Part shown: one piece after another, positions 3,945 through 59,913 of the stretch
Position numbering within the stretch: position 1 is the first letter of the stretch
How the letters are laid out: every line of letters starts with the position of its first letter
Source of the DNA: Macrostomum lignano
Taxonomy: Eukaryota
Length of the DNA: 64,000 nucleotides
Assembly: GCA_002269645.1 (NCBI GenBank)
Contig: NIVC01000815.1
Coordinates: 124,001-188,000, forward strand
Direction of reading: 5' to 3'
Notes under the pieces: model-generated
What the model was told of the DNA's origin: nothing
Database searches by the model: none
Seen by the model: only the letters and a program-made list of their open reading frames with translations
Translations under genes and position numbers: made by a program

Positions 3945-4535
3945 CCCTGCTATGACTGCTTCAGTTTCCCTGCTATGACTGCTTCAGTGTCCCTGCTATG
4001 ACTGCTTCAGTGTCCCTGCTATGACTACTTCAGTGTCCCTGCTATGACTGCTTCAGTGTCCCTGCTATGACTACTTCAGTGTCCCTGCTATGACTGCTTC
4101 AGTGTCCCTGCTATGACTACTTCAGTATCCCTGCTATGACTGCTTCAGTGTCCCAGCTATGACTACTTCAGTTTCTCCTGCTATGACTGCTTCAATTTCC
4201 CCTGCTATGACTACTTCAGTATCCCTGCTATGACTGCTTCAGTGTCCCAGCTATGACTACTTCAGTTTCTCCTGCTATGACTGCTTCAATTTCCCCTGCT
4301 ATGACTGCTTCAGTTTCCCCTGCTATGACTGCTTCAGTGTCCCTGCTATGACTGCTTTCCCCGCTATGACTGCTTCAGTGTCCCTGCTATGACTGCTTTC
4401 CCCGCTATGACCTGCTTCAGTTTCTCCTGCTATGACTGCTTTTCCTTCGCTATGACTGCTTCCGTGTCCCCTGCTATCCCCTGCTATGACTGCTTTAGTT
4501 TCCCCCGCTATGACTGTCTTATGACTGCTTCAGTG
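3945..4535. repeat. Minisatellite, 22-23-bp unit CTGCTATGACTGCTTCAGTGTCC
   Basis: About 25 copies in the kinase 3' UTR. The terminal unit overlaps the kinase stop codon (4530-4532). Confidence 0.92.
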
Positions 4536-7774: not shown

Positions 7775-9230
7775 TGTGAACAGATCGTGGTCTTGTGAAT
7801 ACATTCGTGGTATTCTTTTGAACAGATCTTCAGGTATTCTTGTGAACAGATCTTTAGGTATTTTTGTGAACAGATCTTTAGGTATTCTTGTGAACAGATC
7901 TTTAGGTATTCTTGTGAATAGATTCTCAGGACGTATTTTTGTGAACAGATCATTAGGTAGTCTTGTGAATATATCTTTAGGTATTCTTGTGAATAGATTC
8001 TTAGGTATTCTTGTGACTAGATTCTTAGGTATTCTTGTGAATAGATTATTAGGTATTCTTGTGAATAGATTCTTAGCTATTCTTTTGAATAGATCTTTAG
8101 ATTTTCTTGTAAATAGATTCCTAGGTATTTTTGTGAATAGATCCTTAGGTATTCTTGTGAATAGATTCTTAGGTATTCTGTGAACAAACTCTTAGGTACT
8201 CTTGTGAGATCTTTAGGTATTCTTGTAAACAGATCTTTAGGTATTCTTGTGAACAGATCTTTAGGTATTCTTGTGAACAGATCTTTAGGTATTCTTGTGA
8301 GATTCTCAGGGCGTATTCTTGTGAACAGATCATTAGGTAGTCTTGTGAATAGATTCTTAGCTATTCTTTTGAATATATCTTTAGGTATTCTTGTGAATAG
8401 ATTCTTAGGTATTCTTGTGAATAGATTATTAGGTATTCTTGTGAATAGATTCTTAGGTATTCTTGTGAATAGATTATTAGGTATTCTTGTGAATAGATTC
8501 TTAGGTATTCTTGTGAATAGATTATTAGGTATTCTTGTGAATAGATTCTTAGCTATTCTTTTGAATAGATCTTTAGGTTTTCTTGTAAATAGATTCCTAG
8601 GTATTTTTGTGAATAGATCCTTAGGTATTCTTGTGAATAGATTCTTAGGTATTCTGTGAACAAACTCTTAGGTACTCTTGTGAGATCTTTAGGTATTCTT
8701 GTAAACAGATCTTTAGGTATTCTTGTGAACAGATCTTTAGGTATTCTTGTGAACAGATCATTAGGTAGTCTTGTGAATAGATTCTTAGCTATTCTTTTGA
8801 ATATATCTTTAGGTATTCTTGTGAATAGATTCTTAGGTATTCTTGTGAATAGATTATTAGGTATTCTTGTGAATAGATTCTTAGGTATTCTTGTGAATAG
8901 ATTATTAGGTATTCTTGTGAATAGATTCTTAGGTATTCTTGTGAATAGATTATTAGGTATTCTTGTGACTAGATTCTTAGGTATTCTTGTGAATAGATTA
9001 TTAGGTATTCTTGTGAATAGATTATTAGGTATTCTTGTGAATAGATTATTAGGTATTCTTGTGAATAGATTCTTAGCTATTCTTTTGAATAGATCGTTAG
9101 GTTTTCTTGTAAATAGATTCCTAGGTATTTTTGTGAATAGATCCTTAGGTATTCTTGTGAATAGATTCTTAGGTATTCTGTGAACAGATTCTTATGTATT
9201 CTTGTGAACAGACTCTTAGGTACTCTTGTG
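7775..9230. repeat. Minisatellite, 24-bp unit GTGAATAGATTCTTAGGTATTCTT, with higher-order duplication
   Basis: About 60 copies. The variant block GTGAACAAACTCTTAGGTACTCTTGTGAGATC recurs at 8180 and 8656 (476-bp period). Confidence 0.95.
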
Positions 9231-9617: not shown

Positions 9618-11311
9618 TTAAAACCGGAAATCCTTCTGCAGGCTGCTCTTGATATTCGGTACCATGTAGCAGGTGGAGCCTTTCCCCGGCACGGGGGTCG
9701 AGCCGACCTCGCGACAGACGTGAGTCATCATCTTGAGCAGGTCCATCTTGTCGTAATTCTCCTCGATTACATCGCACAGCTTCTGAATGTACAAGGAGCC
9801 TCTGTATATCGACCTGTAAGACAGGCAATCTTCCCAAGTTGAAAAGCCGAATAAGAAGTCGATGTACTTTGAAATTTTCAACGGCGCCTTCTTGGCGTTG
9901 TCTTCCGGCTCGGGCTTAGACTGAAAGTACTGCATGCCGGTGTCGCCTCGGGTGCGGCAGGCCTGGATGAAGAAGACCTTCGGCTTACCAACCAGGTCTG
10001 GGCAGTGCTCGGCGTCCACCTTGGGGGTTTGGGGTGCATTAATCATAAGCAAACTGATTGCAAGATGTAGAGTGAGGTGGCTTCGAGTGATGTGGCTGCG
10101 AGTGAGGTGGCTTCGAGTGATGTGGCTGCGGGGTGAGGTGGCTGCGGAGTGAGGTGGCTGCGGAGTGAGGTGGCTGCGGAGTGAGGTGGCTGCGGAGTGA
10201 GGTGGCTGCGGAGTGAGGTGGCTGCGAAGTGAGGTGGCTGCGGAGTGAGGTGGCTGCGGAGTGAGGCGGCGGAGTGAGGTGGCTGCGGAGTGAAGTGGCT
10301 GGGGAGTGAGGTGTCTGCGGAGTGAGGCGGCTGCGGAGTGAGGTGGCTGCAGAGTAAGGTAGCTGCTGAGGGCAAGCACTGACGGCAAGCGAGTCACACC
10401 TGCAGGGCTATGTCGCGGAGCTCAACCAGCTTGCCGTCAGTGCCCTGCACCGCGTCGCCGTGGCCGTGTGCCAGGATGAAGCACACAAAATAGTCAATGT
10501 CGGCCAGCACGCCGCTATTAGCAATCTTGCGCATCTCGGCAATCATGCCCTCGCTATCGAGGTCCGGCCTCTCGTGCACCCGAAAATGCAGGTCAGTCTG
10601 GAAGAGCTGGTAGATTCGCTTCACATCCTGCTCGGAGCCGCGTCGAATGTTGTCGAGGTCATTGGATCTGTAAATCTGGTTGATAATGAGGCAGTAGCCG
10701 TTCTTGGGATTCCGCCTCGGGTACACGTCCAGCGAAGGCCGGTAGGGCTCTAGCAGTTCGGACACCGCCCGGTGGCCTAGCAGGTGGCTGATCTCGATGG
10801 CTGACAGGCCGGAGCTGTTCTTCTGTGCCAGCAGCTTAGCATCGGCGCCGACTGCGGGCAGTAGCAGGCGCGTCAGCTCCTCGTTGCTGCGCCTCGCTGC
10901 GTGCATCAGCGCCGTCTCGCCGTCCCGGTCGGCCAGGTCGAGACGCAGCCGACCGGTGCCCAGCAGGCGTCGCGCCGTGGCCACAGCGTCCACGTCGACC
11001 GCCATCATCAGCGGCGTCAGGCCGAGCGTCGTCTCCCGACGATTGACATCGACGCCAGAGTCGATGAGGACGGCGCAGCAGCGGTCGGCGCAGTTCAACG
11101 CCGCATAGTGCAGCGGCGCGGCGCCAGTGGCGTCGAGATCGTCAGCCCCGAGCCCTGCGCCCAGCAGGTACTCCACACAGTCGATGGAGTCGCGCACGAC
11201 CGCCCAGTGGAGCAGCGTTTTGCCGTCGGCTGTGCGCTCGGCCAGCTGGTCGAGTTCCGCTTCGCGAAGGTCCTGGATTCGATTCTGCAGCACCACCAGC
11301 GCGAGGTCCAT
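9618..11311 (-). CDS. Caspase (peptidase C14A) with a 5-ankyrin-repeat prodomain, at least 2 exons, 437 aa
   Basis: Exons 11311-10400 and 10019-9618. Phase-0 intron CAG|GTGTGA...CCCCAAG|GTG joins ELRDIALQ-VDAEHCPDLVGKPKVFFIQACRT. Five ANK repeats, then p20 (GYCLIIN, RRGSEQD, ILAHG, QACRT) and p10 (DFLFGFST, SYR...GSLYIQKLC, P...SSLQKDFRF). Confidence 0.92.
10070..10350. repeat. Minisatellite, 16-bp unit GAGTGAGGTGGCTGCG, in caspase intron
   Basis: About 17 copies between the caspase donor (10399) and acceptor (10020). Confidence 0.92.
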
Positions 11312-11384
11312 GGCTGAGCAGTCGGACTGCTGCAGTGCAATGGGTTTGGTTCGCTGATCAACAAATCAGCTGATTCACAGGTTC

Positions 11385-11615
11385 ACGAGCTCACCGATTC
11401 ACGAATTTTTTATTTAAAAAATTATGGATTTAACAGTTAACAGCTTCACAAATTCACAATTTTACCAATCAACCAATTCACTGATTCACTAATACACAAA
11501 TTCACTACTACACAATTTCACCAATTTACTAATACAGAAATTCACCAATTCACAAATTCACAAATTCACGAATTCACTAACTCACTAATTCACCAATACA
11601 CTAATTCACCAATTC
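11385..11615. repeat. Degenerate 8-bp repeat (TCACCAAT/TCACAAAT/TCACTAAT)
   Basis: Fills the gap between the ankyrin-only ORF and the ANK-caspase and overlaps the last codons of the ORF. Confidence 0.7.
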
Positions 11616-12251
11616 AGCAATCTCCCCAGCAACCTTGTCAGCCGGTAGCGAATGACCCGACCCTGGCATCCTGGGCACCAGCACTTCCAGCACCCGCCTG
11701 CTGCCGCAGCGCTCGGCCACGTTCACCGCCGTCTCGCCATCGTCATTCAACGCCAGCAGGTTGGCCTTCCAGCTGACCAGAAGGTTCGCCACCTCCGCAT
11801 GATCACCGGCAGCGGCCAGGTGCAGCGCCGCGTTCCCGACGCTGTCCCGCAGCTCCAGGCTGACGGCTCCAAATGGATCCTGGCGCAGCAGCAGCTCCAC
11901 GATACTCGAATGGCCGAGCTCGGCCGCCAGCATCAGCGGCGTCTTGGCGGAGGCGTCCAGGGCCATCCGGTTGGCGCCGCACCTAATCAGCAGTTCGGCG
12001 ACGGCCTCAGAGTTGTGCCTTGCGGCCACGTGCAGCGGCGTGGTGCCCTGTGGACTGACCGCGTCAATGCCCAGTCCGTTGTCTAGCAGGAGCTTAGCCG
12101 CATCGAAGCTGTCATTCATCGCCGCGGAGTGCAGCGGTCCAGCCGAGCCGTTGTAGTTGTTGCAGTCTGATGGGTCCTTCATTAAGTCCTTCAGCTCCGG
12201 CGAATTGTTTAACAGAGCGTGCCGCTTCATCACTTTGATGCGTTTCTCCAT
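11601..12251 (-). CDS. Ankyrin-repeat protein (5 ANK), 216 aa if unspliced; possibly a 5' exon of the ANK-caspase
   Basis: First in-frame ATG is 12251 (the track's 12305 start is TTG). Repeats PLHSAA, TPLHVAA, TPLMLAA, ALHLAA, TAVNVA. Confidence 0.85.
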   Translation of the reverse strand: MEKRIKVMKRHALLNNSPELKDLMKDPSDCNNYNGSAGPLHSAAMNDSFDAAKLLLDNGLGIDAVSPQGTTPLHVAARHNSEAVAELLIRCGANRMALDASAKTPLMLAAELGHSSIVELLLRQDPFGAVSLELRDSVGNAALHLAAAGDHAEVANLLVSWKANLLALNDDGETAVNVAERCGSRRVLEVLVPRMPGSGHSLPADKVAGEIAELVN

Positions 12252-12726
12252 TGCGCGTTCTGGCTTGGCTGGTTTAGCTGGCGGGCCTGGAATCGAGTGT
12301 TTCAAGCTCCTGTTGGCTTGTTTCAGACACCGAGATAGTTTATATCAACAGGATGGAAAGGCCCTGCGGCGCGCTTCTCCTCCTTTCTCTCTTATCTCTG
12401 TCTCTCTCCTTTTATCTGTGGCTGTGCGGAGTTGCAATTAGAATGTGCACCCAGATTGAATGTACATTGACCTCTGCGGCGCTCTCCCCCTCCTCCTCTC
12501 TCTCTTTCTGGCTGCGCGGGACCTGCTGGAATCAGAATGAATGTACACCGGGGTTTAAATGTACATTTAAATTGTAGGTAGCCTCAATCCAATGTACATT
12601 TTGCGCGCTGGACTGCGCACTGAAGCTGGGCTGCTTTAATTCTTGCCTTAGTTTTAATTTTACAACAATTGGCTCGCTTGATGGGTGAAATTGAATGAGT
12701 ATAAGCCACAGATACTAGAATAACCC

Positions 12727-18858: not shown

Positions 18859-20670
18859 ATGAACGGCACCGACTTGTTGAACGGCAGCGGCAGCCCGGCT
18901 GGGGAGCCGCCGGACCCGAAGTTCACCCTGCCAGCTGGTGTCGCCATGCTGCTGTGCCTGCTGCTTGGCCTGGCTGGCAATCTGCTCCTGGTGCTGGTGA
19001 TCCTGAGCCGCCGGGATATGCGCACCAATCTTATCAACTTGTTCATAGCCAGCCTGTGCATCAACGACTTGCTGAATCTGCTCACCAACCAGAGCATGGT
19101 TGCCGTGTCCTACCTGGCTCACGGATGGGTTCTTGGCGACCTGCTGTGCGACCTCATGCCGGAGCTGAACATGCTGCTGGTGTGCGTGTCTCTGTGGCAC
19201 CACGCCCTGATTGGCCTGCATCGCTACATTGTGGTGGTGCACCGCAACGCCTACCTGGGGATGCACAAGGGACTGTACTCGGTCTGCATGCTGGTTGGGA
19301 CTCGACTGTTCGCCACCATGCTCAGCCTCACGCATCCGCTATTTAACGGGGGCCGCTGGTTTAACATGACCACTTATCAGGTAGCTGTGCCCTTCACCTG
19401 TGCCCTTCACCTGTGCCCTTCACCTGTGCCCTTCACCTGTGTCCTTCACATGTGCCCTTCACCTGTGCCCTTCACCTGTGCCCTTCACCTGTGCCCTTCA
19501 CCTGTGCCCTTCACCTGTGTCCTTCACATGTGCCCTTCACCTGTGCCCTTCACCTGTGCCCTTCACCTGTGCCCTTCACCTGTGCCCTTCACCTGTGCCC
19601 TTCACCTGTGCCCTTCACCTGTGCCCTTCACCTGTGCCCTTCACCTGTGCCCTTCACCTGTGCCCTTCACCTGTGCCCTTCACCTGTGCCCTTCACCTGT
19701 GCCCTTCACCTGTGCCCTTCACCTGTGCCCTTTACCTGTGCCCTTCACCTGTGCCCTTCACCTGTGCCCTTCACCTGTGCCCTTCACCTGTGCCCTTCAC
19801 CTGTGCCCTTCACCTGTGCCCTTCACCTGTGCCCTTCACCTGTGCCATTCACCTGTGCCCTTCACCTGTGCCCTTCACCAGTCCCTGATAATCTCAGCAT
19901 CAGATCCTCTGATTCTTCCAATGGCTCCCAATCCCCCTCTCGATCCCCTTGCAATTTGATCGGCCTTGCGAGCTGCAGCTGAGGCCAGAATGGCTGCTTA
20001 TCTATCCGCTCAGTCCGTATCTCCACGCCCAGATCTTTTCGAAAAATTTAACGGATTGGCCACCCAAACCTTTTTTGCTCACCAGGCAAAGATGCTTCGC
20101 TGCATCTACACCGCTGAGCACAAGTCCCGCATCGGAATTGTAGTCCTGCTCACCCAGCTGCTCCCCTGCCTCATTGTGTTGATCTGTTTCGCCCTGATCT
20201 TCGTTTTCGTGCACCGCACCGGAGTCCGGTCCACCGTGGCCGACAGGCTGCTGCTGAAACGCGAACTGCAGATCACGAAGATGTTCGGCGCGGTGTTCGC
20301 CATGTTCCTCATGGGCTTCCTGCCCTACGGCTGCCTGCGAATGCTCGACTCGGACAACAAGCTCAGCCCCAATGCCTACGTGGCCGTCACCCTGATGTAC
20401 GCCCTGGCCTCGTGCACCAACCCGCTGATCTTCGGCGCCATGAACACCGACATTCGAGCCGCCTGCCTGAAGATGCTCGGCCGTCAGCGAAGCCGCCCGG
20501 CCGCCACAAGCCGAGGCTGCAGCGGGGTGAGCGGCGTCTTCAGCCAGCAGTGCAACGGGGACGGTGGAGCCGCTGTCGAAGAGGAGTTGCCGAAGCGGAA
20601 GTCAGGCGGCAAGAATTTCTTACTTGTGCCAGCGAAAAGCAAAGTGCCGGCTGTGACTGAAATTGCCTGA
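18859..20670 (+). CDS. Class A (rhodopsin-like) 7TM GPCR, moody/Tre1/melatonin-receptor-related, 2 exons, 368 aa
   Basis: Exons 18859-19380 and 20086-20670, phase-0 intron CAG|GTAGCT...TTTTTTGCTCACCAG|GCA. N-terminal sequons NGT/NGS, GN in TM1, D in TM2 (INDL), Cys at the start of TM3, HRY at the DRY position, ECL2 Cys, ITKM...F...FLPY in TM6 (moody/Tre1-like), and NPLIF at the NPxxY position. Confidence 0.93.
19385..19878. repeat. Minisatellite, 13-bp unit CCTGTGCCCTTCA, in GPCR intron
   Basis: About 38 copies starting 4 nt after the donor GT. Confidence 0.96.
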
Positions 20671-21888
20671 GATCTAGCCTGAGATCTAGCCTGAGATCTA
20701 GCCTGAGATCTAGCCTGAGATCTAGCCTGAGATCTAGCCTGAGATCTAGCCTGAGATCTAGCCTGAGATCTAGCCTGAGATCTAGCCTGAGATCTAGCCT
20801 GAGATCTAGCCTGAGATCTAGCCTGAGATCTAGCCTGAGATCTAGCCTGAGATCTAGCCTGAGATCTAGCCTGAGATCTAGCCTGAGATCTAGCCTGAGA
20901 TCTAGCCTGAGATCTAGCCTGAGATCTAGCCTGAGATCTAGCCTGAGATCTAGCCTGAGATCTAGCCTGAGATCTAGCCTGAGATCTATCCTGAGATCTA
21001 GCCTGAGATCTAGCCTGAGATCTAGCCTGAGATTTACTTTGAGATTTACTTTGAGATCTAAACTTAGATTTAGCTTGAGATCTAGCCTGAGATCTAGCCT
21101 GAGATCTACCTTGAGATCTAGTCTAAGATTTAGTCTCAGATCTACCCTGAGATCTAGCTTGAGATCTAGCCTGAGATCTAGCCTGAGATCTAGCCTGAGA
21201 TTTACTTTGAGATCTAAACTTAGATTTAGCTTGAGATCTAGCCTGAGATCTAGCCTTAGATTTAGCTTGAGATCTAGCCTGAGATCTAGCCTGAGATCTA
21301 CCTTGAGATCTAGTCTAAGATTTAGTCTCAGATCTACCCTGAGATCTAGCTTGAGATCTAGCCTGAGATCTAGCCTGAGATCTAGCCTGAGATTTACTTT
21401 GAGATCTAAACTTAGATTTAGCTTGAGATCTAGCCTGAGATCTAGCCTTAGATTTAGCTTGAGATCTAGCCTGAGATCTAGCCTGAGATCTACCTTGAGA
21501 TCTAGTCTAAGATTTAGTCTCAGATCTACCCTGAGATCTAGCTTGAGATCTAGCCTGAGATCTAGCCTGAGATCTAGCCTGAGATTTACTTTGAGATCTA
21601 AACTTAGATTTAGCTTGAGATCTAGCCTGAGATCTACCTTGAGGTCTAGTCTAAGATTTAGTCTCAGATCTACCTTTAGATCTATCCTGAGATCTATCCT
21701 GAGATCTAGCCTGAGATTTAGCCTGAGATCTAGCCTGAAATCTAACCTTAGATGTAGCTTGAGATCTAGCCTGAGATCTAGCCTGAGATCTAGCCTGAGA
21801 TCTAGCCTGAGATTTACTTTGAGATTTAAACTTAGATTTAGCTTGAGATCTAGCCTGAGATCTAGCCTGAGATCTACCTTGAGATCTT
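20665..21888. repeat. Minisatellite, 12-bp unit GCCTGAGATCTA, with a 192-bp higher-order repeat
   Basis: About 100 copies. The first unit is the GPCR's last codon plus TGA stop. The variant TTTACTTT recurs at 21201, 21393 and 21585 (16-unit period). Confidence 0.96.
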
Positions 21889-25779: not shown

Positions 25780-26925
25780 CTCTGATCCCGTCTCTAAATC
25801 TCTCCGATCCCTTTCCTAGTTTCTCCGATCCCCTCTCCCAATCACTCTGATCCCCTCCCCAATCTCCCTGATCCCCTCTCCAAATCACTCTGATCCCCTC
25901 CCCAATCTCTCCGATCCCCTCTCCCAATCTCTCTGATCCCCTCTCCTAATCTATCTCTGATCCCCTCTCCCAATCTCTCTGATCCTCTTTCCTAATATCT
26001 CGCTGATCCCCTCTCCTAGTCTCTCCGATGCCTTCTCCCAATCTCTCTGATCCCCTCCCCCAATCTCTCTGATCCCCTCCCCCAATCTCTCTGATCCCCT
26101 CTCCTAATCTATCTCTGATCTCCTTCTCCCTATCTTTCGGATCCCTTCTCCTAATCTCTCCGATCCCCTCTCCCAATTTCTCTGATCCCCTCCCCAATCT
26201 CCCTGATCCCCTCTCCAAATCACTCTGATCCCCTCCCCAATCTCCCTGATCCCCTCTCCAAATCACTCTGATCCCCTCCCCAATCTCTCCGATCCCCTCT
26301 CCTAGTCTCTCCGATGCCCTCTCCCAATCTCTCTGATCCCCTCCCCCAATCTCTCTGATCCCCTCTCCTAATCTATCTCTGATCTCCTTCTCTCCATCTT
26401 TTTGATCCCCTCTCCTAGTCTCTCTAATCCCCTTCTCCCAATCTTTCGGATCCCTTCTCCTAATCTCTCCGATCCCCTCTCCCAATTTCTCTGATCCCCT
26501 CTCCTAATCTCCCTGATCCCCTCTCCCAATCTCTTTGATCCCCTCTCCTAATCTCTCCGATCCCCTCTCCCAATTTCTCTGATCCCCTCTCCCAATCTCT
26601 TTGATCCCCTCTCCTAATCTCTCCGATCCCATCTCCTAATCTTTCTGATCCCCTTCTCCCAATCTTTCTGATCCCCTCTCCCAATCTCTTTGATCCCCTC
26701 TCCTAATCTCCCTGATCCCCTCTCCCAATCTCTCTGATCCCCTCTCCTAATCTCCCTGATCCCCTCTCCCAATCTCTCTGATCCCCTCTCCTAATCTCCC
26801 TGATCCCCTCTCCCAATCTCTCTGATCCCCTCTCCCAATCTCTCTGATCCCCTCTCACAATCTCTCTGATCCCCTCTCCCAATCTCTCTGATCCCCTCTC
26901 CTAATCTCCCTGATCCCCTCTCCTA
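25780..26925. repeat. Pyrimidine-rich minisatellite, 22-bp unit CTCTGATCCCCTCTCCCAATCT
   Basis: About 50 copies, more homogeneous toward the right end. Confidence 0.94.
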
Positions 26926-29084
26926 ATCAATTTCTGACCCTTTACTGCAAATCCTCTCTTCAGCCAGATTCTGAATTCAACTCCCAGCAGCTGCATCATT
27001 GTGTCAACCATAAAACGTTCAGTGTCACAGGGTGCGCTATTTTGCATCCGCTGGGATTGCGGCCTGCAAATGCGATCTTGGTCTACCTGCCTGAAAAAGT
27101 AGAACCAACACGTACATAAACAGGTGCGGCAATTAGCAGCTTTACACCCAAACAAGCCAAAGCGAGCCAACACCATATAGTTCGACGCCCACACACACGC
27201 TTATGCTAAAAACAGGCTAACCTGCGGCAACCTACCGCAGCACCCTGTGTCTGCAATTAGCCCGTATTATTGCGACGCTATAATCTGAACGCCGCCAATG
27301 GAACCTGGAGGGCCGGGAGGGGCATTTTTAACCCCCTCGCTAACTGCATAGTCCACCTCAATCCGGAAATACCCGCCCACCCGCTTTGGCGAATTGTGCT
27401 AATCTGTTGTAAAAAAAATATTATTGTTAATAATTTGATTGTATCAAACTATGAGCGAAAAGATATTTGTTTATTGGTTGTTTAATTATTGTTTTTTTAG
27501 ACAAAATGTGCCTGCTTCTAGCTTTATGTTGGCACAAAGTTTTCCGCCGATGTAGACAATTTCGTGTGTGAAAAACAAGTTCATTTCCTCGCGTGATCAA
27601 AACTAATTAATTAGGGAATTAGTTGGACTGGAAAGCGGATAGCTTTGTGAAAACTCGGTATATAGATAAATACGTATTTATAGTTATTACATGTAGTTCT
27701 ATCCGTGGATTATGCGTATTATATCTACATGTAGATAATTATTGAAAAACACTCAAAACAGATAAAGGAGTCATTAGCGAAATTTTAATGCAAATATTTA
27801 ACAGAAAATATACATCTGCACTAATATACATGTAATCTAAAGTTTATTAAAGTCAACAAAAATTGACCTAAAAGCCACTGAATGTAGATGTAGCTCCAGA
27901 ATGCAGATATAGGACTCAGAGATTAACCAATAGTGTTAATTCAATGTTATGATTAGGAAACTAAATGCATTAGATGCCATCAAATTTGAAGTTGAATGCG
28001 AACAAGAAAAACGAATGTATTTTTCTAACTATACAGGGAAGTATTACAGCCAAAAACGTTCGATTACATCTAGAAGATTAAAAGTTTAACAAAAGTCTAA
28101 AGACAATTAAAAGTAGTAGAGCGTTTTCTGAGCTACCTCTTTATCGTTGTAATCCAAATTTTACATCCCAGATCCTTTAAAAACTTGTGTTTTTTCCCAC
28201 GAAATACGCTATTTTGAGTTTTAAAATGATAATTGAAGTTGCAGGTATTATAACAAAGAAGTATTTGATAATTAAATAAAAACTACTTAGCCTAACCAAC
28301 CGCTGAAACAAACAATACTTTTTGTATTGATATTGTGAGAAAACACTGCATTAAACGATTTAAAAGTCTTAACACCAATGGTTATTACCAGAATACAACA
28401 TCGAAACTATGTCAACATTTTTTCATCAGAATGTGTCATGTCAAAGCACCCCGTTGGCCGTTGGGTGTTCATATTTGAAATTTCGAATGTAAATGAAGTA
28501 TTCAAAGAAAAATTCTGTCTTTACGTGTTTCTTATTTGTTTTTATATTTTTTTTGCATAATTTAAAACAGTTTATAAAGATATATTTACAAAAGAGTGCT
28601 AGTTTTCTGAGGCACATCAACATGTATAGAAATCATTTCAAGCAATCGTGTCATAAACAGATAAAATTCATAGAAAATGCTGAATACTTTGCTTTATGTA
28701 TTGCAGAAAATAATTTATTATTTTTTGTTGCAAAGCCTATTTATATTTATGATAAAGATATTCTAAAACTTTATATTTTATTATACATACTATTTCAACA
28801 AACTTAACCAGCATAGCATCTTTTTTATAAAATCATACTTAAATGGACCCCAGCAGTTCAATGTGATTATCAAATGATGAAATCATTGAAGCCTTTAGTT
28901 GTTTTATATTTAAATTTAAATACACTTAGTTCAAACAAACCATTTTTAGCAGATGGATAAGGATAACATCTTTGGCTTATTTTTTATGGACTGATTTAAT
29001 GGTGTCCAAGATTTCTAATTTACAGTGGCTATCAAAGAGCACCAACAAATAATTCATGCTGCTCACCCAACTCAGACTCAGACT

Positions 29085-29216
29085 ATGTACGCGTACAGCC
29101 GGCACACCATTGGCCTTTTCCTCAATTTCCTTCTAGTCTGCATCGTGTTTATTGCTTGGGGCTTCCTTTTATTTGCCTCTCGCACCGTCTCCGAGCGCTA
29201 TTTGGCTGACAAGTGA
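29085..29216 (+). CDS. 43-aa single-pass membrane micropeptide, sarcolipin/phospholamban (regulin)-like
   Basis: MYAYSRHTIGLFLNFLLVCIVFIAWGFLLFASRTVSERYLADK. GC-richer codon island in very AT-rich DNA, ATG with A at -3, upstream acceptor TTTACAG (ends 29025) and downstream AATAAA (29538-29543). It could instead be the end of a longer terminal exon. Confidence 0.6.
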   Translation: MYAYSRHTIGLFLNFLLVCIVFIAWGFLLFASRTVSERYLADK

Positions 29217-29750
29217 TTTTTACTTTTGTATGTAAATGCCTACTGAATATAGAATATAGAAGCATTGCAAATAGTTCTTAGTCATAGTTAAAGAGTTTAT
29301 GCAATTATAAATATATACATTAGCTGCTTTTTAGCCATGTTTAAGCTTAGTAATGTAGCTAAACCGTAAAAGTATTTTTAGAAGAAAGCTGCAACTCATT
29401 CATTCGCTAGCATAGCCTAGTCTGTCCACTTCCCATTACTTGCTTAACTTACTACAAGCTTCGTTATCTAGTGGCCTATTTTGTCTGGCCACCTAAACGC
29501 TGCAATTTTTGTCATGTCAGAGCATATAAGTCGTTTTAATAAATGAGCTCGTGTCTCAATATTATTCGTGTTTGGCCATACCAAATACAAGTCTTTATCT
29601 TTTTAACTTTATCATTTCTTTAGGCCATACCACAGATGAAGTAATAGAATGGGAGCTAATCAAGCTCTTGAATTATGTTCTTAATTCCCGCAGTCTAGAC
29701 AAAATTAATAATCTTCACAGGACTTTCTTCGTCAAAGCTAAGCCAAAATC

Positions 29751-30107
29751 ATGTCGCTTTCAAACTGCACTACTAGTAGTAACGCGTATAGAAACACCTC
29801 GATATTTCTGGCTGAAGTCGAGGAAACCTTCAAGCGCATCCTGTCGCACAAGGGTGTGATCGGCGCCATTATTGTGAGCTACGACGGCATTCCAATCCGG
29901 AGTTCATTCGCCGAGAATGACGTCACCGTGCAGTACTGCGCGCTGATTCAGCAGCTGGCTCAGAAGGCAAAGTCGGCCGTGCGCGACCTTGACCCCGGCA
30001 ACGATTTGACCTTCCTACGAATCCGCTCCAAAAAGAACGAGATCATGGTGGCGCCCTCCCCGGACTACCTGCTGTTGGTTGTTCAGGAGCCCAATGACCA
30101 GCCTTGA
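29751..30107 (+). CDS. DYNLRB: Dynein light chain roadblock-type, single coding exon, 118 aa
   Basis: [16 protein letters not shown]....GIPIRS...QY...[30 protein letters not shown] matches the family. It has a 19-aa extension between Met and AEVEET. Confidence 0.93.
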
Positions 30108-30544: not shown

Positions 30545-31110
30545 GGGAGATCTATTCTCATGCATACACATGTAGATTGTATAATGGGAGATCTATTCTC
30601 AGGTATCGATTGTATGATGAGAGATCTATTCTCATGCATAGATTGTATGATGAGAGATCTATTCTCATGCATAGATTGTATGATGACAGATCTATTCTCA
30701 TGCATAGATTGTATGATGAGAGATCTATTCTCATGCATAGATTGTATGATGGGAGATCTATTCTCATGCATAGATTGTATGATGAGAGATCTATTTTCAT
30801 GCATAGATTGTATGATGGGAGATCTATTCTCATGCATAGATTGTATGATGAGAGATCTATTTTCATGCATAGATTGTATGATGAGAGATCTATTCTCATG
30901 CATAGATTGTATGATGGGAGATCTATTCTCATGCATAGATTGTATGATGAGAGATCTATTCTCATGCATAGATTGTATGATGGGAGATCTATTCTCAGGT
31001 ATAGATTGTATGATGAGAGATCTATTCTCATGCATAGATTGTATGATGAGAGATCTATTCTCATGCATAGATTTTATGATGAGAGATCTATTCTCAGGTA
31101 TATGGTTGAT
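30545..31110. repeat. Minisatellite, 33-bp unit GATCTATTCTCATGCATAGATTGTATGATGAGA
   Basis: About 17 copies. Confidence 0.95.
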
Positions 31111-34190: not shown

Positions 34191-37100
34191 TTAGACGGCC
34201 ATGACCGGCTGGGCCATCATGAGCTCAACGCAGTGCTGCCGAACCTGCTGCCGGTTGCACTCGTTCACCGCGCGCTCCGCCTCGTGGCGCGAGAGAAGCT
34301 GACGAATGCCTCACCAGATGGGAGGCCGTCAGGACCGATGGCGATCTTAATGTCCGGAATGGTTTGCTGCGGGCGTGCGGCAACGGCGTGCAAGCATATA
34401 AATGCGTGCAAATAGGTTGTGCAAATGAATAGATGCGTACAAATAGAGTGCAATTTGATAGATGCGTGCAAATAAAGTGTGCAATTTGATAGATGCGTGC
34501 AAATAAAGTGTGCAATTTGATAGATGGTGCAAATAAAGTGCAAATGGATAGATGCGTGCAGATAGGGTGTGAAGTTTAATAGATGCGTGCAGATGGGTTG
34601 TGCAAATTAAAAGATGCGTGCAAATAGGGTGTGCAATTTGATAGATGCGTGCAAATAGGGTGCAATTTGATAGATGCGTGCAAATAGAGTATGCAGTTTG
34701 ATAGATGCGTGCAAATAGAGTATGCAGTTTGATAGATGCGTGCAAACGCCGCCGGCACTCACGGGATTGGAAGCGAAGATGGACTCGAACAGGCGCAGAA
34801 TCTCGTGAAAGTCGATGTCCTTAGGCAGGCCCTTGGCTATGATGGTGTTCATCGTGTTGAGCATGCCGGGCTGGTACATGAACGAGCCCGGCTGCATCGG
34901 CGGCTGCTGCTGCGGCGACGGCGCGTACGGATAGGCATCAGCGTGTTGGCCAGCAGGCTCGGCGCCGAGATGGGCGACGGCAGGGTCACGTGAGGAAACT
35001 GGATGGCGCCTGGACGCGACACCGGGATTAGCGGCAGCGGCGGCGGCGGTGGCGGCGCCTGCGGACTGTGGAACATCGGCTGCGGGTGGGTGAAGCGGTG
35101 GCCGGATGGTGCGGCTGGCTGACGGGCAGCAGGGTGCCGGCCGACATGGCGGGGCTGAGCAGCGGCCGTGGAACAGCCCGGGCTGGCTAGCCGTCTGCTG
35201 CATCTGCTGTTGCATTGCGGCTGCCGCGGCGGCTGCGGCGGCGGTGGCCGCTGACGGCGGACTGCCGAGAGCGCCGGGGCCAAGGCCGAGATTAGTTGGC
35301 ACCTCGTGCGGCGCGCACTGGCTGACCTCTACCTGGGAGCGCTTGCCGGTTGGCAGGTAGAACAGCTTGCGGTTCTTGCCTCGCAGGCCATGTGTGCGGC
35401 CAGCTCGGAGCTCATCTGGATGATGGCCTCGCCTGCCGGCTGGCCGATGTGATTGTACACAGGTGGACTCCCTGCGGCGGTTGCGTGCGGGGTTATATAA
35501 CATTCTTAAGGACCTTCTTTGATACTTTAGTATCTTTTATATCTAGAACTGTTGGAAATTCGAACCCAGGTTTTCACTTAAATTCACTAACAACGGACTA
35601 ATCGAACCCAGGACCTCGATTGAATTCGAACCAAGACCTCAGTGGAATTCGAACCCAGGATCTTGATGAAATTCAAACTCAGGACCTCAGTGGAATTTGA
35701 ACCCAGGATCTTGATGGAATTCGAACTCAGAATCTTAAATAAATTCGAACCCAGGATCTTGATGAAATTCGAACTCAGGACCTCAAATGAATCGAACCCA
35801 GGACCTTGATGGAATTCGAACTCGACCTCGGTGGAATTCGAACCCAGGATCTTGATGGAATTCGAACTCAGAACCTTAATGGAATTTGAACCCAGGACCT
35901 TGATGGAATTCGAACCCAGGACCTCTATGAAATTTAAAACCAGGATCTCAATGGAATTTAAACTGAGGACCTCAACGGAATTCGAACCCAGGACCTTGAT
36001 AGAATTCGAACTCAGAACCTTAATGGAATTTGAACCCAGAACCTTAATCGAATTCGAACCCAGGACCCAGGACGCGGAGGCCAGATTTGTGCACTCACCT
36101 GGAAGACAATATTCTGCGAATGGCCCTCCAAAAAGTTGAGAATGTCGGCGACGCTGGCGTCGACGGGCATGCCGCGGACGCGGATGAACATCTTGGAGAA
36201 ATTTGGCGGCTGCAGCAGCGACAGCGGAGTGAAGGGCAGCAGGCCGGGCGCGTTGGCCGGATTGTCGTGCCCGTTCTCCGCCTGCTGCGGTTCTTGAAGC
36301 TGCACAGCACCTGGTTAACCTCAGCTGGCGTGGACTTGAACAGCTCGATGTACCTGTTGCCAATGTGCTGCCTGTGATTCTGCAGTGCCGCTCCGCCAGG
36401 ATTTCGTTCTCGAATATCACGAAGGCGTCTCCGGTGGCGCGGCCGTCCTTGTGGTTGACGAACAGCACCCCTTCGGAGTCGAACTGCACAGGGCACTCGC
36501 CTTGCGAAAGAAGTCCAGCTGAAAAACATTGGGAAGGGATGGCGGCGGCGCGACCGCGGTTGAGAATGGAGGATTAATTGAGGATTAGGCCTGGGTCTCC
36601 TGGGACGCCTGTGCACACGGTAGTACAGTAGTATACCTCTCAGCATGTAACAGCTAAATTTTATTGAAGGCAATTTTGCAATATTGCCTTTGTTATCCTA
36701 CTTATGGTCTCGTATAAGTAGCACATCTAGCACATTAGAACTGTGCCCTATCTCAACTGTCCAAGTAGAAAACATAAAGTGTCCGCATCGATAGTGAATG
36801 AATGCGCGTGTGCCTGAAAAGCTGTCACCAGCGCGCCGCTTTGTCATGCAAGCCGAGTCCCAGCAGAGATCACGGTATCCAACAACGAACACTTTAACCC
36901 GCTTTCAAACACAATTGCAACAAAACCGGGGCTAGATGACCTGTTACTTTTGACGCGGCGTCAGAAAAAAAAGAAATTGCAGAAACAACCAAAATGCTAA
37001 ATAAATTTCACACCTGCAGAAAATTATTACTGTTGCTTTTGAAAATGTTTTAAAAACGCTCAGCGAGCGCTGGAGATGCACCAGACGCGGTCACCCCACA

Positions 37101-40100
37101 CGTTCAGCAACCGTAAGGTATTTAAAACACTGTTAGAAGCTTGCAAATTCATTGTCACTTTGTTAGACGCTTGCTCCCATACTTCCCTATTAATCAGATT
37201 TCAAAGGTGCGCGGCTTTTGCAAAATAAACACAAATACTCGGATATAAATGAGAGAAAGACCAGACCGTTGATGACACAAACATGCCGGACTTTTAGGGG
37301 GCCCAACAGACATTGACGGCCGCTGCCACACTTGCACCAACTGTTAGGAATGAGCACCGGTACCGGACGGACTCGCAGCTGCCGACAGCCGCCCTGATCC
37401 CGATCTCACCAGCCGCATGGCAACAGCTTAGCAACATTTAATATAGTGCAGATTTACCCTTAAAATAGTAGGATTTCCCTAGGAAGCGGTGAGGATTTTC
37501 CTTGGATAGAGTGGGGATTTCCCTTAGATAAGGAGGGGATTTTCTTCGATACGGTAGGGATTCCCTTGGATACGACGGGGATTTCCCTTGGATATAACAG
37601 GGATTTCCCTAGGATACGGCGGGGATTTCCTTGGATACGACGGGATTTCCTTTGGATACGGCGGGATTTCCTTGGATACGGTGGGAATTTCCCTTGGATA
37701 CGACGGGGATTTCCCTAGGATACGGCGGGGATTCCCTTGGATACTGCGTCAGCGACATTGTGCGGCTTAGCTTGAATCAACAGACAAGCCAAACCGTTGC
37801 ATACAGTACAGTTTACAGTTTTTGCACTGTTTAGACAGATAAATAAAACTTTCGAATGATGCAAGCAGGATGCTGGAATATTCAACACCAATTTCAGTCT
37901 AAAAAATAGTTTTATAACAGCCAAAACACAAGGACCACCAGATTTTAGACGAGACAACTCGTTTCTAGGGAAAAATTTAAAGGCTTGCATTGCCGAGATC
38001 GGGACTTTCAAATCCATTAAAAAGTTAATATTTTTGCAAATTTTTATTTTTTTAATTTATGATTTCGAATAAAACATCATTTTTTCACCTAAAATCGAAG
38101 TTCCCAACTTTGCCAATGCATTTCTTATAAAACGCGAGCCTTCAAAACCTTTCCTAGAAACAAACAGTCCAGTCTATCCCATTTCTAGTGATCCTTGGCT
38201 AAAACAGCGCCGTTGCCAAGCAGCGGCCAGCGGCCCCTCTTCTGCCTTCAATTGTCGAGCCAGCAACCGAGGATAAAAAAACTGCAGACACCCGAAAAAT
38301 TGATGTTATTTCCCTTAGAGCCAAAAGTTGCACACTGCCACAGTTGGATTAATGAGCTGCATTCCCGGAGGATCTATCAGAAGAGCACTTGTACTTAACA
38401 GAGGCAGTCGGGGCCCTACTCAGATTCCGTGATTGACTCACACTTGATCAACTCTCAGAGTCCACAGTAATTCGATGCTTAATTCGCTTCATCAACGCAG
38501 CTAAAAAATGGTGTTACGAGTGGGCATTTATCATTTCTCCCATGCACAGACAATATTCCTATCCTACTACTGTCATTATTGAGTAGTGAAAATTTGAAAA
38601 GAGGAGAGGGAAAGAAAAAAACGAGCTTAACTCCCCCGCTGTTGCTCCGCACACCCACTCGCTGCGTTCACCAACCAGCCCCACAAAATCTGCTTCGATA
38701 ATCAGCTGGTCGATTTTAGCTTTTATATCGATTTTTCAGCAGGCTAAGACACAGATCACTTATTGAATGAAGGCTGGAAGGACAGCTGGGGGCACGTGTG
38801 TCTTACCCGAACTGGGGGGAGGGGCGGGGGCTGCAGCGCAGTGTGCGGCAGGCAGTGGGAGCACAGCATGTGTCCGCAGTGCAGCCCCCGCAGCTGCACC
38901 AACACAGCCGGCCAGTCGCATAGACGCCGGTCGCAGTTCCTTATCTTCCCCAATAGAACTGTGAGGAGACAAGCTAACCTGGCCTACCCTACGCGCTGCT
39001 CTTCCCCAACTCAAAAACACAACCCGGTAGATAAAGTGAATTTTGCTACACACCTGAAACTTGAAGCATTTGGCTAATTTGGCTATAGAATTGTTTTTGG
39101 TAAAAGCTTCAGACTTGTGCGGAGGAACACGGAAAAAAGACACCAAAAAGAGAATTTTTCTGCTTCTGTAGCGCAATGGGAAAAAACTGTTGCATTTATG
39201 TACGAGTCGCTTCGCAATTGGGTGAAAAATTAGAAGAGTAAATAAAAATTGATTAGGAATGTTATTTATCTACAGGCATATATTCAGCGCAATCTATAAG
39301 AGTAGCTCATATTTTATTAGCAAGGATAATGGCAGGGGGGGGGGTTAAAAAATCTTTTAAAACGACTCATCCGCGCTAACGAAATTAGATTTGAAATTCT
39401 ATATAAAAAGAGATATTCAAGTCTGGTCAGTGAAACACGCTGCGACGCTGTTCACACAGTCGCCGTTTGAGGCACCGCAGAGTGCTTTTGTCTGCATAGA
39501 CTTCAATCGATTATTAATTTATTATTAATGTATGGGGAGGGCACAGAGGTGTATGGGGAAGGCACAGAGGTGTATGGGGAGGGCACAGAGGTGTATGGGG
39601 AGGGCACAGAGGTGTATGGGGAGGGCACAGAGGTGTATGGGGAAGGCACAGAGGTGTATGGGGAGGGCACAGAGGTGTATGGGGAGGGCACAGAGGTGTA
39701 TGGGGAAGGCACAGGGGGGTATGGGGAGGGCACAGAGGTGTATGGGGAAGGCACAGGGGGTATGGGGAGGGCACAGAGGTGTATGGGGAGGCACAGGGGG
39801 GTATGGGGAGGGCACAGAGGTGTATGGGGAAGGCACAGAGGTGTATGGGGAGGGCACAGAGGTGTATGGGGAAGGCACAGGGGGGTATGGGGAGGGCACA
39901 GAGGTGTATGGGGAAGGCACAGGGGGTATGGGGAAGGCACAGAGGTGTATGGGGAGGGCACAGGGGGTATGGGAGGGCACAGAGGTGTATGGGGAAGGCA
40001 CAGGGGGTATGGGGAGGGCACAGATGTGTATGGGGAAGGCACAGGGGGGTATGGGGAGGGCACAGAGGTGTATGGGGAAGGCACAGGGGGTATGGGAAGG

Positions 40101-43100
40101 GCACAAAGGTGCATGGGGAGGGCACAGGGGGTATGGGAAGGCACAGGGGGTATGGGAGGGCCGGGGGTATGGGAGGGCCGGGGGTGGGAGGGCACAGGGG
40201 TATGGGAGGGCACAGGGGTATGGGAGGGCCGGGGGATGGGAGGGCACAGGGGTATGGGAGTGCACAGGGGGTATGGGAGTGCACAGGGGGTATGGGAGGG
40301 CAGGGGGGATGGGAGGGCACAGGGGTATGGGAGGGCACAGGGGTATGGGAGGGCCGGGGGGTGGGAGGGCACAGGGGTATGGGAGTGCACAGGGGGTATG
40401 GGAGGGCCGGGGGATGGGAGGGCACAGGGGTATGGGAGGGCCGGGGGGTGGGAGGGCACAGGGGTATGGGAGGGTCGGGGGTATGGGAGTGCACAGGGAG
40501 TATGGGAGGGCCGGGGGGATGGGAGGGCACAGGGGTATGGGAGGGCCGGGGGTGGGAGGGCACAGGGGTATGGGAGGGCCGGGGGATGGGAGGGCACAGG
40601 GGTATGGGAGGGCCGGGGGTGGGAGGGCACAGGGGTATGGGAGGGCCGGGGGATGGGAGGGCACAGGGGTATGGGAGGGCACAGGGGGGATGGGAGGGCA
40701 CAGGGGGTATGGGAGGGCCGGGGTATGGGAGTGCACAGGGGGTATGGGAGTGCACAGGGGGTATGGGAGTGCACAGGGGGTATGGGAGGGCCGGGGGGTG
40801 GGAGGGCACAGGGGTATGGGAGGGCCGTGGGGGGATGGGAGGACACACGGATTATGGGGAAGGAACAGGGGGCACGTGGGTGGGCATAGGGAGGACAAAG
40901 TTGAAGTACAGGCGATTTAAAAGTGAATGCTTAGTTGAACAATTCGGCCAAATGAAAATTTGGGCCTGCTGATCCCGACCTTCCCCGACCTAACCAAATA
41001 CCCCGATATGGTTAAAAAGACGTCGAAATTGTAAAAAATGGTCAATCGCCCCCGACTTAGTCTCCTCCCGAGAGGCACTTACAATTTCGTCAGCCGAGAC
41101 CGTGTAGGGCAGGCCGCGCATACGCACGAGACTCTGCGTGGGCTCAGTCAGCTTGGCTAGGAAATTCTCGCCCTCTTTTGTATCGGCGCCAGCTACGGCG
41201 ACAAAGTCTCGACCGGTGGCCCTGTAGACCTCGATGTAGCGCTGCTGCATGTGGTGCCGGTGCTTCTTCAGCGCGATGTCGCGGTGCTCCTGGCTGTCGA
41301 ATCTGATCAGAGCCTCGCCGTTGCGCCGGCCGACTTTAGACAGCACCAGGGCGATGCCGCCGGCGCTGATGTTGAGGCCGCGGAAGAACTTGTGAATGTC
41401 GGCGTCTGTCGCCTGCCAGGGCAGGCCGCGGGCGCGGACGACAGACTCGTCATCTACGGTGTCGGTTTTGCGCCTGCGGGATGGGGCGGTCTCGTGATTT
41501 ACGAGGGTCTGTGAGCATACATCCTAATAACCGGTAAGTCGCAAAAACGCCAACCCGAAAGACGTAAAACTAATTAGATGACGAGGCATGTTGCCTTTAT
41601 AATACAGTAAAAACTACTCCCGCCGTTTACCCAAATTACGTTTTAAGTTTATTTTTGCTTTCGTTTAGGGTTTCTTTCATAGGTAAGTCGCATCTTTGGT
41701 CAAAAAGTAAGTCGCACGGTTCTAGTGATAAGGATAATCCGGATTCAGGATAATCCGGTGATCCAGGATAATCTGGTAATCCAGGATATTCTGGTGATCC
41801 AGGATATTCTGGTGATCCAGGATATTCTGGTGATTCAGGATATTCTGGTGATTCAGGATATTCTGGTGATTCAGGATATTCTGGTGATTCAGGATATTCT
41901 GGTGATTCTGGTGATTCAGGATATTCTGGTGATTCAGGCTCTTTTTGATTGATCTCTTGATTCATGATAGAATATCTCTGGTAGATCTCATGACTATGGA
42001 TAGCATAACGTGAGATCCTTCGAGTTAGGCTAGATTTTTCTGGTCCGCCGCCCTGCTATGTGATCCCCTTCCCATTCACCCCAGCACTGTTGCTGACCGA
42101 GCGCACCCAATCCTCTCTTGGGTTGCGGGCGGCACTGCAGCCTCGTGTATCTATTTTGAATATCCCTTTCATTTATAATAATTGTTTACTAGACCCAATT
42201 AGCACTCATAATATCCAGCTACGCATACATAACCCGACTCACTGCAAGGAAGTGTGGGGAAGAACAGGAAGGAACTGAAGGCTTGTTTTGGATTTGATCC
42301 AGCGGGTCTGGGCTCTGAGTCTTTGTGAAAATGTCCCAAGCGTTGTCGACCACAGATCGCTGCCCAGATATAGCCCGGATTCGAAGGCTAGAAGTGGCCG
42401 GGGATGGCCGGAAGGACCGGGGGGTCGATTAGAGCAAACAATCAATTTTTATAAATGCCATTCCGCACGCCTCCGATTCTTCTAATTCTGCCTGTGGGAT
42501 TCAAATCCCCGCGCTTTTGGGGATCCGCGCGGCTGGCCCTTTCCCTTTAATCCGCGATTATGGAAGCCGTCACGGGCTGAGTCGGGGGCGGAAGTCGAGT
42601 CATACAACCAACCCCCGACTCACCCCCACCCCGTATTTTGCGCGTGACGTGGCATAGTAGGTCACTCCCCACACTGCTACAGATGGCACAGATACAGTAA
42701 GGCTGTTACCAAACACTTACACAATGGCAGGATGGTAAAACTGGTTCACTTTCTCCGGTTCCTTGAAGGTGTGACCTGCGTGTTTTGGGGGTAAAGTTGA
42801 ATGAGAAAAACTATACTGTAAATGGGAGCATGAATAACACGAATAACATCTATTGAAATGTACTATTAGAACATAGGACTTTAAGCAGGACTTTCCCATT
42901 GAAATTTTTCGAATGGGATTTTTGTCCTCCATTTAGACAGCGGGTGCACGAGATATGGGATATCTATCCCAAACTAAACCATTGGGGTCTGAGATATGGG
43001 ATTTTTATCCCAAACTAAACCATTGGGATCTGAGATATGGGATTTTTATCCCAAACTACCCATTGGGATCTGAGATATGGGATTTTTATCCCAAACTACC

Positions 43101-59882: not shown

Positions 59883-59913
<31 letters not shown>

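Follow-up and report, generated by a model that had tools for sequence, protein, structure and literature searches.

What is encoded by a short open reading frame (ORF) of 43 codons that lies on the plus strand, at positions 29085-29216, of a 64-kb stretch of DNA (hereafter the window) from contig NIVC01000815.1 of the free-living flatworm Macrostomum lignano (assembly GCA_002269645.1)? A first-pass annotation had taken its product, a micropeptide with one hydrophobic helix, for an invertebrate regulin, that is, a relative of sarcolipin and phospholamban controlling the Ca2+ pump SERCA in muscle. One half of that interpretation, a free-standing and unannotated invertebrate membrane micropeptide, survives the present analysis; the other half, the regulin identity, does not. 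The reading that we consider probable as a whole is that of an unannotated membrane micropeptide, most likely a flatworm member of the family of SMIM27 (small integral membrane protein 27), presumably ciliary and encoded by the first gene of a putative operon whose second gene specifies a roadblock dynein light chain.

A membrane micropeptide gene and its paralogue

The ORF is present exactly as claimed: its 43 codons are followed by a TGA stop at 29214-29216 (NIVC01000815.1:153085-153216 for the whole coding sequence), the product is MYAYSRHTIGLFLNFLLVCIVFIAWGFLLFASRTVSERYLADK, and the nearest in-frame stop upstream of the ATG is at 29016. Codons 9-32 (29109-29180, plus strand) specify the hydrophobic transmembrane helix, as judged from hydropathy, AlphaFold2 and the alignments described below. 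The peptide has a single hydrophobic stretch at about residues 9-32, with a maximum 19-residue Kyte-Doolittle mean of 2.68, and AlphaFold2, given the single sequence, predicts one helix over residues 2-42 with a mean predicted local distance difference test score (pLDDT) of 86. There are 213 ATG-initiated ORFs of 30-100 residues in the window; only two of these reach 2.5 in mean hydrophobicity over 19 residues, and the micropeptide is the highest. Its helix includes Asn14-Phe15 and Trp25, all of which are kept in the paralogue introduced below. That the N-terminus is short and cytosolic, as had also been proposed, is not established, the charge distribution being ambiguous as to membrane topology. 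The micropeptide offers few candidate tryptic fragments, for example HTIGLFLNFLLVCIVFIAWGFLLFASR.

The local signals that had been attributed to the ORF are likewise found where they were said to be. Its GC content is 0.50 (0.67 at third codon positions) versus 0.28 and 0.33 in the two 500-bp flanks, a coding-like composition in AT-rich DNA, and the ATG has a good start context with an A at -3. Sixty nucleotides 5' of the ATG, TTACAG (29020-29025, plus strand) is a candidate 3' splice site or spliced-leader trans-splice acceptor that agrees with the M. lignano acceptor motif [T/C]TNCAG (PMC8629364). The AATAAA poly(A) signal at 29538-29543 (plus strand), 322 nucleotides 3' of the stop, is the sole canonical one in the interval that separates the micropeptide stop from the coding sequence of roadblock. 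The gene has indeed escaped annotation: NCBI calls none at this position of the contig, and exact and word-indexed searches of a collection of 15 billion proteins, queried with the 43-residue peptide, the 63-residue extended frame and the alignment of the two paralogues, found neither the micropeptide nor a protein containing it.

The case for a gene is carried by a paralogue. M. lignano has two roadblock loci besides the window type, and at one of them (L006/L007), where the roadblock protein is 76% identical to that of the window, the roadblock gene is preceded, at about 1.4 kb and on its own strand, by a 47-codon ORF with the product MYSYSRHAIGYLLNFLLLAIILISWIFLFYVSRTISERYLEESSSTA. A tblastn search aligns the window peptide with this ORF from Met1 onwards (E 1.7e-15), with 26 identities in 42 residues (62%). 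The differences are concentrated at third codon positions, as expected under purifying selection: first, second and third positions are identical in 27, 35 and 12 of the 42 codons, and the proportions of non-synonymous and synonymous differences are 0.25 and 0.95, the latter saturated. In tblastx comparisons of the two loci only the micropeptide ORF and the roadblock coding sequence are recovered, the remainder being unalignable. Taken together, these comparisons strongly support the view that the ORF is a real gene, independently translated from its own ATG and under purifying selection; judged from the same alignments, there are two old micropeptide paralogues, each located upstream of a roadblock gene on the same strand.

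Besides the window copy (L003) the genome contains two more copies of the region, one 99.6% identical (L001) and the other about 97% identical (L002). Three near-identical copies fit the hidden polyploidy that is reported for this species (PMC10468722). Neither the 132-nucleotide ORF nor the roadblock coding core differs at any site among the three; since in L002 about 2% of the non-coding sites around them are changed, some three changes would have been expected in the ORF, which is weak support when taken alone. The 35 nucleotides just 5' of the ATG have undergone several changes among the copies, including in-frame replacements of His by Ser and of Ile by Thr.

Could a larger protein nevertheless end in this ORF, joined on as its final coding exon at 29025/29026? 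The TTACAG is a good acceptor and the frame is open from 29019, but we regard this explanation as extremely improbable. The similarity to the paralogue, and also that to SMIM27, begins exactly at Met1, which argues that the ORF is not the tail of something longer. In the paralogue an in-frame stop lies four codons before the ATG (there is also an ATGCAG 4 nucleotides 5' of it), the nearest upstream acceptors of the two loci enter the frame in different phases, and the stretches from acceptor to ATG have no similarity to each other. The in-frame stretch upstream of the window ORF varies among the copies in the manner just described while the ORF itself is invariant, no protein with this sequence exists in the collection, and the 9 kb upstream are free of called genes. 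The objection that the ORF is only part of a larger protein thus fails. We also considered whether the ORF might end in a splice donor and be joined to roadblock, and rejected this: the phases are mismatched and the paralogue has no donor there.

We give just as little credit to the idea that the ORF arose by chance in non-coding DNA, or that it matters only as an upstream ORF regulating the translation of roadblock. Short ORFs are abundant, as the 213 in the window attest, but a chance sequence would hardly display a third-position bias together with 62% amino acid identity across a duplication that is old enough to have erased the flanks. As for a regulatory role, roadblock has a trans-splice acceptor of its own (see below), so that the mature roadblock mRNA would not contain the micropeptide ORF.

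Regulin or SMIM27-like peptide

If the gene is real, to which family does its product belong? The first-pass annotation favoured the regulins on the basis of the pentapeptide LFLNF and several further matches to sarcolipin. PDB entries 1JDM, 3W5A and 1ZLL served to check the sequences of sarcolipin and phospholamban used here; that of sarcolipin matches 1JDM and the listed identities are correct. LFLNF is identical to residues 8-12 of human sarcolipin, the best ungapped register has 10 identities (shuffle P of about 0.002-0.008), and BLASTP gives 17.3 bits with E 0.001 over 17 residues. Moreover, both paralogues have Asn14-Phe15, a regulin-type Asn near the helix end (although by itself a short and unspecific motif), and regulins are small tail-anchored peptides with a key Asn near the cytosolic end of their helix (PMC8396278), Asn34 in phospholamban and Asn11 in sarcolipin. 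On this reading the peptide would occupy the SERCA groove formed by M2, M6 and M9, where Asn14 would touch M6, and would lower the Ca2+ affinity of the muscle pump.

Against this, the P values are inflated by selection, because the ORF was chosen for its LFLNF motif in the first place. The paralogue reads YLLNF, with Tyr instead of Leu at -3 from the Asn; its similarity to sarcolipin is not above that of shuffles (P 0.04-0.17 for the human and 0.23-0.63 for the rabbit protein), and BLASTP finds no alignment to sarcolipin at E <= 100. The Pfam models for sarcolipin (PF05366) and phospholamban (PF04272) detect neither flatworm peptide at E <= 10, yet besides their own proteins they detect each other's, with E values of 0.0073 and 0.034; a phmmer search of the PDB gives nothing at E <= 10, and hhalign assigns the flatworm peptides a probability of 20.6% over 14 columns against an alignment of sarcolipin and phospholamban. 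Beyond the Asn, the regulin literature stresses the Trp23-Leu-Leu register shared by sarcolipin and the sarcolambans, and the luminal RSYQY tail of sarcolipin. In the flatworm peptides the spacing from Asn to Trp is 11 rather than the 12 of sarcolipin, the Trp is followed by GFL or IFL, and there is neither a WLL motif nor an RSYQY tail, the actual tail being SRT(V/I)SERYL. A homologue or analogue of sarcolipin, phospholamban or sarcolamban is consequently very unlikely in our view, the more so as SMIM27 is closer.

The human SMIM27 sequence used here is identical to the database record (NP_001336047.1, small integral membrane protein 27, 55 residues). In single BLASTP comparisons the two flatworm paralogues score 33.1 and 32.3 bits against it (E 2e-9 and 6e-9), and both align without gaps over residues 1-43 with 16 identities. 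None of 4000 shuffles reaches this score; the z value is 12 when the whole peptide is shuffled, and still 9-10 when the N-terminal flank, the helix and the C-terminal flank are shuffled separately. A hidden Markov model (HMM) built from the two flatworm peptides gives SMIM27 31-34 bits, sarcolipin 8-9 bits and phospholamban -2 bits, and its best unrelated match among 8,343 six-frame ORFs, taken from the loci and the window with the copies of the peptide excepted, has 9 bits. Similarly, hhalign against seven primate SMIM27 sequences returns a probability of 95.9% (E 6.5e-9) over columns 1-42.

The distribution of the matching residues is also informative. Common to both paralogues and SMIM27 are M1, S5, R6, L16, L17, I20, I23, W25, S32, R38 and L40; the paralogues agree with each other at 26 positions, and SMIM27 has the same residue at 11 of these. 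At positions where the paralogues differ, SMIM27 often agrees with one of them. The flatworm peptides have 43 and 47 residues and their helix, at about residues 9-32, is in the same register as that of SMIM27. Because S5, R6, S32, R38 and L40 are among the shared residues, the likeness extends outside the membrane. As far as these alignments and profiles go, the micropeptide resembles SMIM27 much more than it does sarcolipin or phospholamban, and we think it likely that it is a homologue of the vertebrate protein.

The principal competitor is a lineage-restricted transmembrane micropeptide that is unrelated to SMIM27 and resembles it through the convergence of short hydrophobic peptides, perhaps acting on some other partner via Asn14 and Trp25. 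At the scale of the whole library of 1.84 billion representatives, the match of a single flatworm sequence to SMIM27 has an E value of 0.9-6.8, which is not significant and which explains why the blind phmmer search did not list the protein. That search, with the window peptide at E <= 0.001, returned no credible homologue, and SMIM27 was absent from its listing; two long repetitive proteins, one at E 9e-5 with 12 matched stretches and one at E 8e-4 with 6, were judged spurious. Nor was there a homologue in the word-indexed collection, in the PDB by sequence, in two scans of the JGI metagenomes or in Pfam at E <= 10, where the paralogue alone gave weak matches to PspB and DUF6097 below the cut-offs of those families; for SMIM27 itself we found neither a Pfam family nor a solved structure. 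Several further considerations weigh on the same side: the SMIM27 lead did not arise from a blind search, neither the JGI metagenomes nor the other loci examined yielded sequences bridging the flatworm peptides and SMIM27, the SMIM27 sequences compared are all from primates, and the C-terminal tails differ, the basic extension of SMIM27 (residues 41-55) being missing from the flatworm peptides.

Convergence does not readily account, however, for an ungapped alignment over the full length of the flatworm peptide that starts at Met1 in both proteins and takes in the non-membrane residues S5, R6, S32, R38 and L40. Nor does it account for z values of 9-12 that persist in the segment-preserving shuffles, for the hhalign probability, or for the fact that both paralogues match SMIM27 equally well while SMIM27 often sides with one where they differ. 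The two-sequence profile, rescaled to the whole library, still gives SMIM27 an E value of about 0.002-0.02. We therefore rate convergence as an unlikely alternative to homology with SMIM27.

The roadblock neighbour, a putative operon and cilia

The next gene on the plus strand is a Roadblock/LC7 dynein light chain ORF at 29751-30107 (Pfam Robl_LC7, E 9e-24; conserved core at 29811-30104), which starts 535 nucleotides 3' of the micropeptide. Its closest relatives are M. lignano proteins, P0001 matching over 98 residues. The sister copy does not share the first 20 codons counted from the ATG at 29751, and directly before the core the window reads TTTCTG (29805-29810, plus strand), where the AG of an acceptor has been lost. 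In L007 (TTCCAG/GCG) and L002 (TTTCAG/GCT), just upstream of position 10001 in either locus, an acceptor stands directly before codon 2 of roadblock and there is no in-frame genomic ATG, so that the AUG of a spliced leader would supply Met1 and the protein would begin MAEVEETF. The spliced-leader AUG of a flatworm can reportedly serve as an initiator (Cheng et al., J Biol Chem 2006). The window copy and L001 have TTTCTG with an in-frame ATG 60 nucleotides upstream instead, whereas in L002 a 2-nucleotide insertion puts that upstream ATG out of frame. At the third roadblock locus (L004/L005), where the micropeptide was not found, roadblock starts from a genomic ATG at the canonical position (L004 9980-10001).

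In M. lignano the spliced leader is CGGTCTCTTACTGCGAAGACTCAATTTATTGCATG, which ends in ATG, and two genes on one strand are classed as an operon if less than 1 kb separates them and the second is trans-spliced (PMC8629364). In the window about 600 nucleotides take in the micropeptide stop, the only AATAAA and the acceptor site of roadblock. This same-strand spacing of some 0.6 kb, together with the spliced-leader start in the related copies, gives a layout that suggests a micropeptide-roadblock operon: the micropeptide would be the first of two genes, and the second, roadblock, would receive its start codon from the leader.

Two minor observations concern these roadblock loci. In L004 (9988-10000) the genomic start codon of roadblock closes the heptamer TTGCATG, with which the spliced leader also ends; the match may be due to chance or be the trace of an origin from a cDNA that bore the leader. 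A tRNA-like stretch noticed by eye in the intergenic region of L007 was discarded, ARAGORN calling no tRNA there.

What might the micropeptide do? Table 1 of a review (PMC13143143, citing Sun et al., Dev Cell 2025) lists SMIM27, with 55 residues, as a protein of the ciliary transition zone whose partner is the MKS complex and whose role is in ciliogenesis or cilium assembly. By analogy, the flatworm micropeptide may reside in the ciliary transition-zone membrane, where it would serve the MKS module as a small subunit or partner and help to build or gate epidermal, protonephridial and sensory cilia. Contact with its partner would be made through the transmembrane helix (polar residue 14 and Trp25) and the juxtamembrane residues Ser5-Arg6, Ser32, Arg38 and Leu40. 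Roadblock serves as a light chain in dyneins of three kinds, cytoplasmic, intraflagellar-transport and axonemal. Its pairing with the micropeptide is thematically coherent with cilia, which is a weak hint in favour of the ciliary role that we infer.

There are also points that count against this part of the interpretation. The function of SMIM27 is known here from a single line of that review table, and the 2 kb upstream of both paralogues contain no RFX X-box beyond one match at chance level. The operon has been deduced from sequence signals only. A search next to the roadblock genes of Fasciola hepatica, Spirometra, Schistosoma mattheei, Lamellibrachia and Ostrea edulis did not turn up the micropeptide. 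Finally, the window copy has peculiarities of its own: its roadblock acceptor AG is mutated, and at 29053-29058 it reads TTCATG, where both sister copies have TTTCAG, a second candidate acceptor. The change creates a new out-of-frame ATG 29 nucleotides 5' of the micropeptide start, opening an ORF of 26 residues (29056-29136, plus strand) that overlaps this start and is restricted to the window copy. With these two lesions in its sequence, the window copy may be the least well expressed of the three.

The remainder of the window contains other genes, four of them on the minus strand: a Src-type SH3-SH2-tyrosine kinase (4530-6489), an ankyrin-repeat caspase (9618-12305), an hnRNP F/H-like RRM_11 protein (34607-36489 and beyond, for which the sister loci have a called product of 872 residues) and a zinc-finger homeobox protein (58031-59956). 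A tyrosine-kinase gene also lies upstream and on the opposite strand in L006 (1-1227) and L007 (541-1237, minus strand), just as in the window, and on account of this shared neighbour the two micropeptide-roadblock loci may be the remnants of a larger and old duplication, either segmental or of the whole genome. A rhodopsin-family G-protein-coupled receptor (18859-20670, plus strand) is split over two ORFs that correspond to positions 1-159 and 138-260 of the 7tm_1 profile; between the two halves there are 38 copies of a 13-bp tandem repeat (19385-19879), presumably in an intron or the third loop. About 19.8 kb of the 64 kb (31%) consists of minisatellite arrays with periods of 12-48 bp (Tandem Repeats Finder score of at least 200), for example at 7791-9230, 20665-21887, 25780-26928, 30573-31096, 39529-40872 and 61083-62744, and in all six frames the long spurious ORFs mostly stem from these arrays. 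A 33-bp array among them starts 466 nucleotides after the roadblock stop. Rfam gives no match over the whole window.

Significance and comparison with known systems

At the least, this analysis adds to a flatworm genome annotation a validated and conserved micropeptide gene that was missing from it. It also carries a lesson of method: identity over a pentapeptide such as LFLNF inside a transmembrane helix is a poor guide to family, and it was the tests with the paralogue and with profiles that overturned the regulin reading. A second result concerns the roadblock genes, among whose recent copies the start codon has been swapped between the spliced-leader AUG and genomic AUGs. If the relationship to SMIM27 is correct, a recently recognised transition-zone microprotein can be traced back to the bilaterian ancestor, and M. 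lignano, which is tractable, heavily ciliated and open to transgenesis, becomes a model in which to study it. We advance more tentatively, as a possibility that we would not yet favour, the broader proposal that SMIM27 is an ancient bilaterian transition-zone micropeptide that has been missed in invertebrates and that in Macrostomum has been duplicated and co-transcribed with roadblock in a spliced-leader operon. Were this true, the micropeptide-roadblock pair would amount to a compact ciliary gene module.

How does this system compare with those already described? With the regulins the flatworm peptides have in common a small size and a single membrane pass, an Asn-Phe near the N-terminal end of the helix, a Trp in its C-terminal half and, in the window copy, the LFLNF of human sarcolipin. 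They differ in having no similarity to these at the level of profiles, in a motif that the paralogue keeps only partly, in an Asn-Trp register that is off by one and in a helix that extends about three residues further beyond the Asn; in addition they have neither the RSYQY tail nor a cytosolic domain of the phospholamban type. The parallel with the described operons of M. lignano (PMC8629364) is close in its layout, a same-strand pair with a gap of 0.6 kb from stop to acceptor and a downstream acceptor of the [T/C]TNCAG type. It is less so in two respects: the downstream acceptor of the window reads TTTCTG, and, its first gene having escaped annotation, the pair is not listed as an operon.

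There remains the comparison with SMIM27. The flatworm peptides are shorter, with 43 and 47 residues, and they end without the basic tail of SMIM27, RKKYPDKIFGTNENL; at position 14 they have Asn-Phe where SMIM27 has Ser-Val; they exist as two paralogues, both linked to roadblock genes; and localisation to the transition zone and association with the MKS complex have been reported for SMIM27 alone. On the other hand, both are micropeptides with one transmembrane segment, a helix that begins at about residue 10 and a polar residue at position 14, and they align without a gap from Met1 to residue 43. They have also had a similar fate at the hands of annotators, both loci having been treated as non-coding or left unannotated; the human SMIM27 gene is the former long non-coding RNA TOPORS-AS1.

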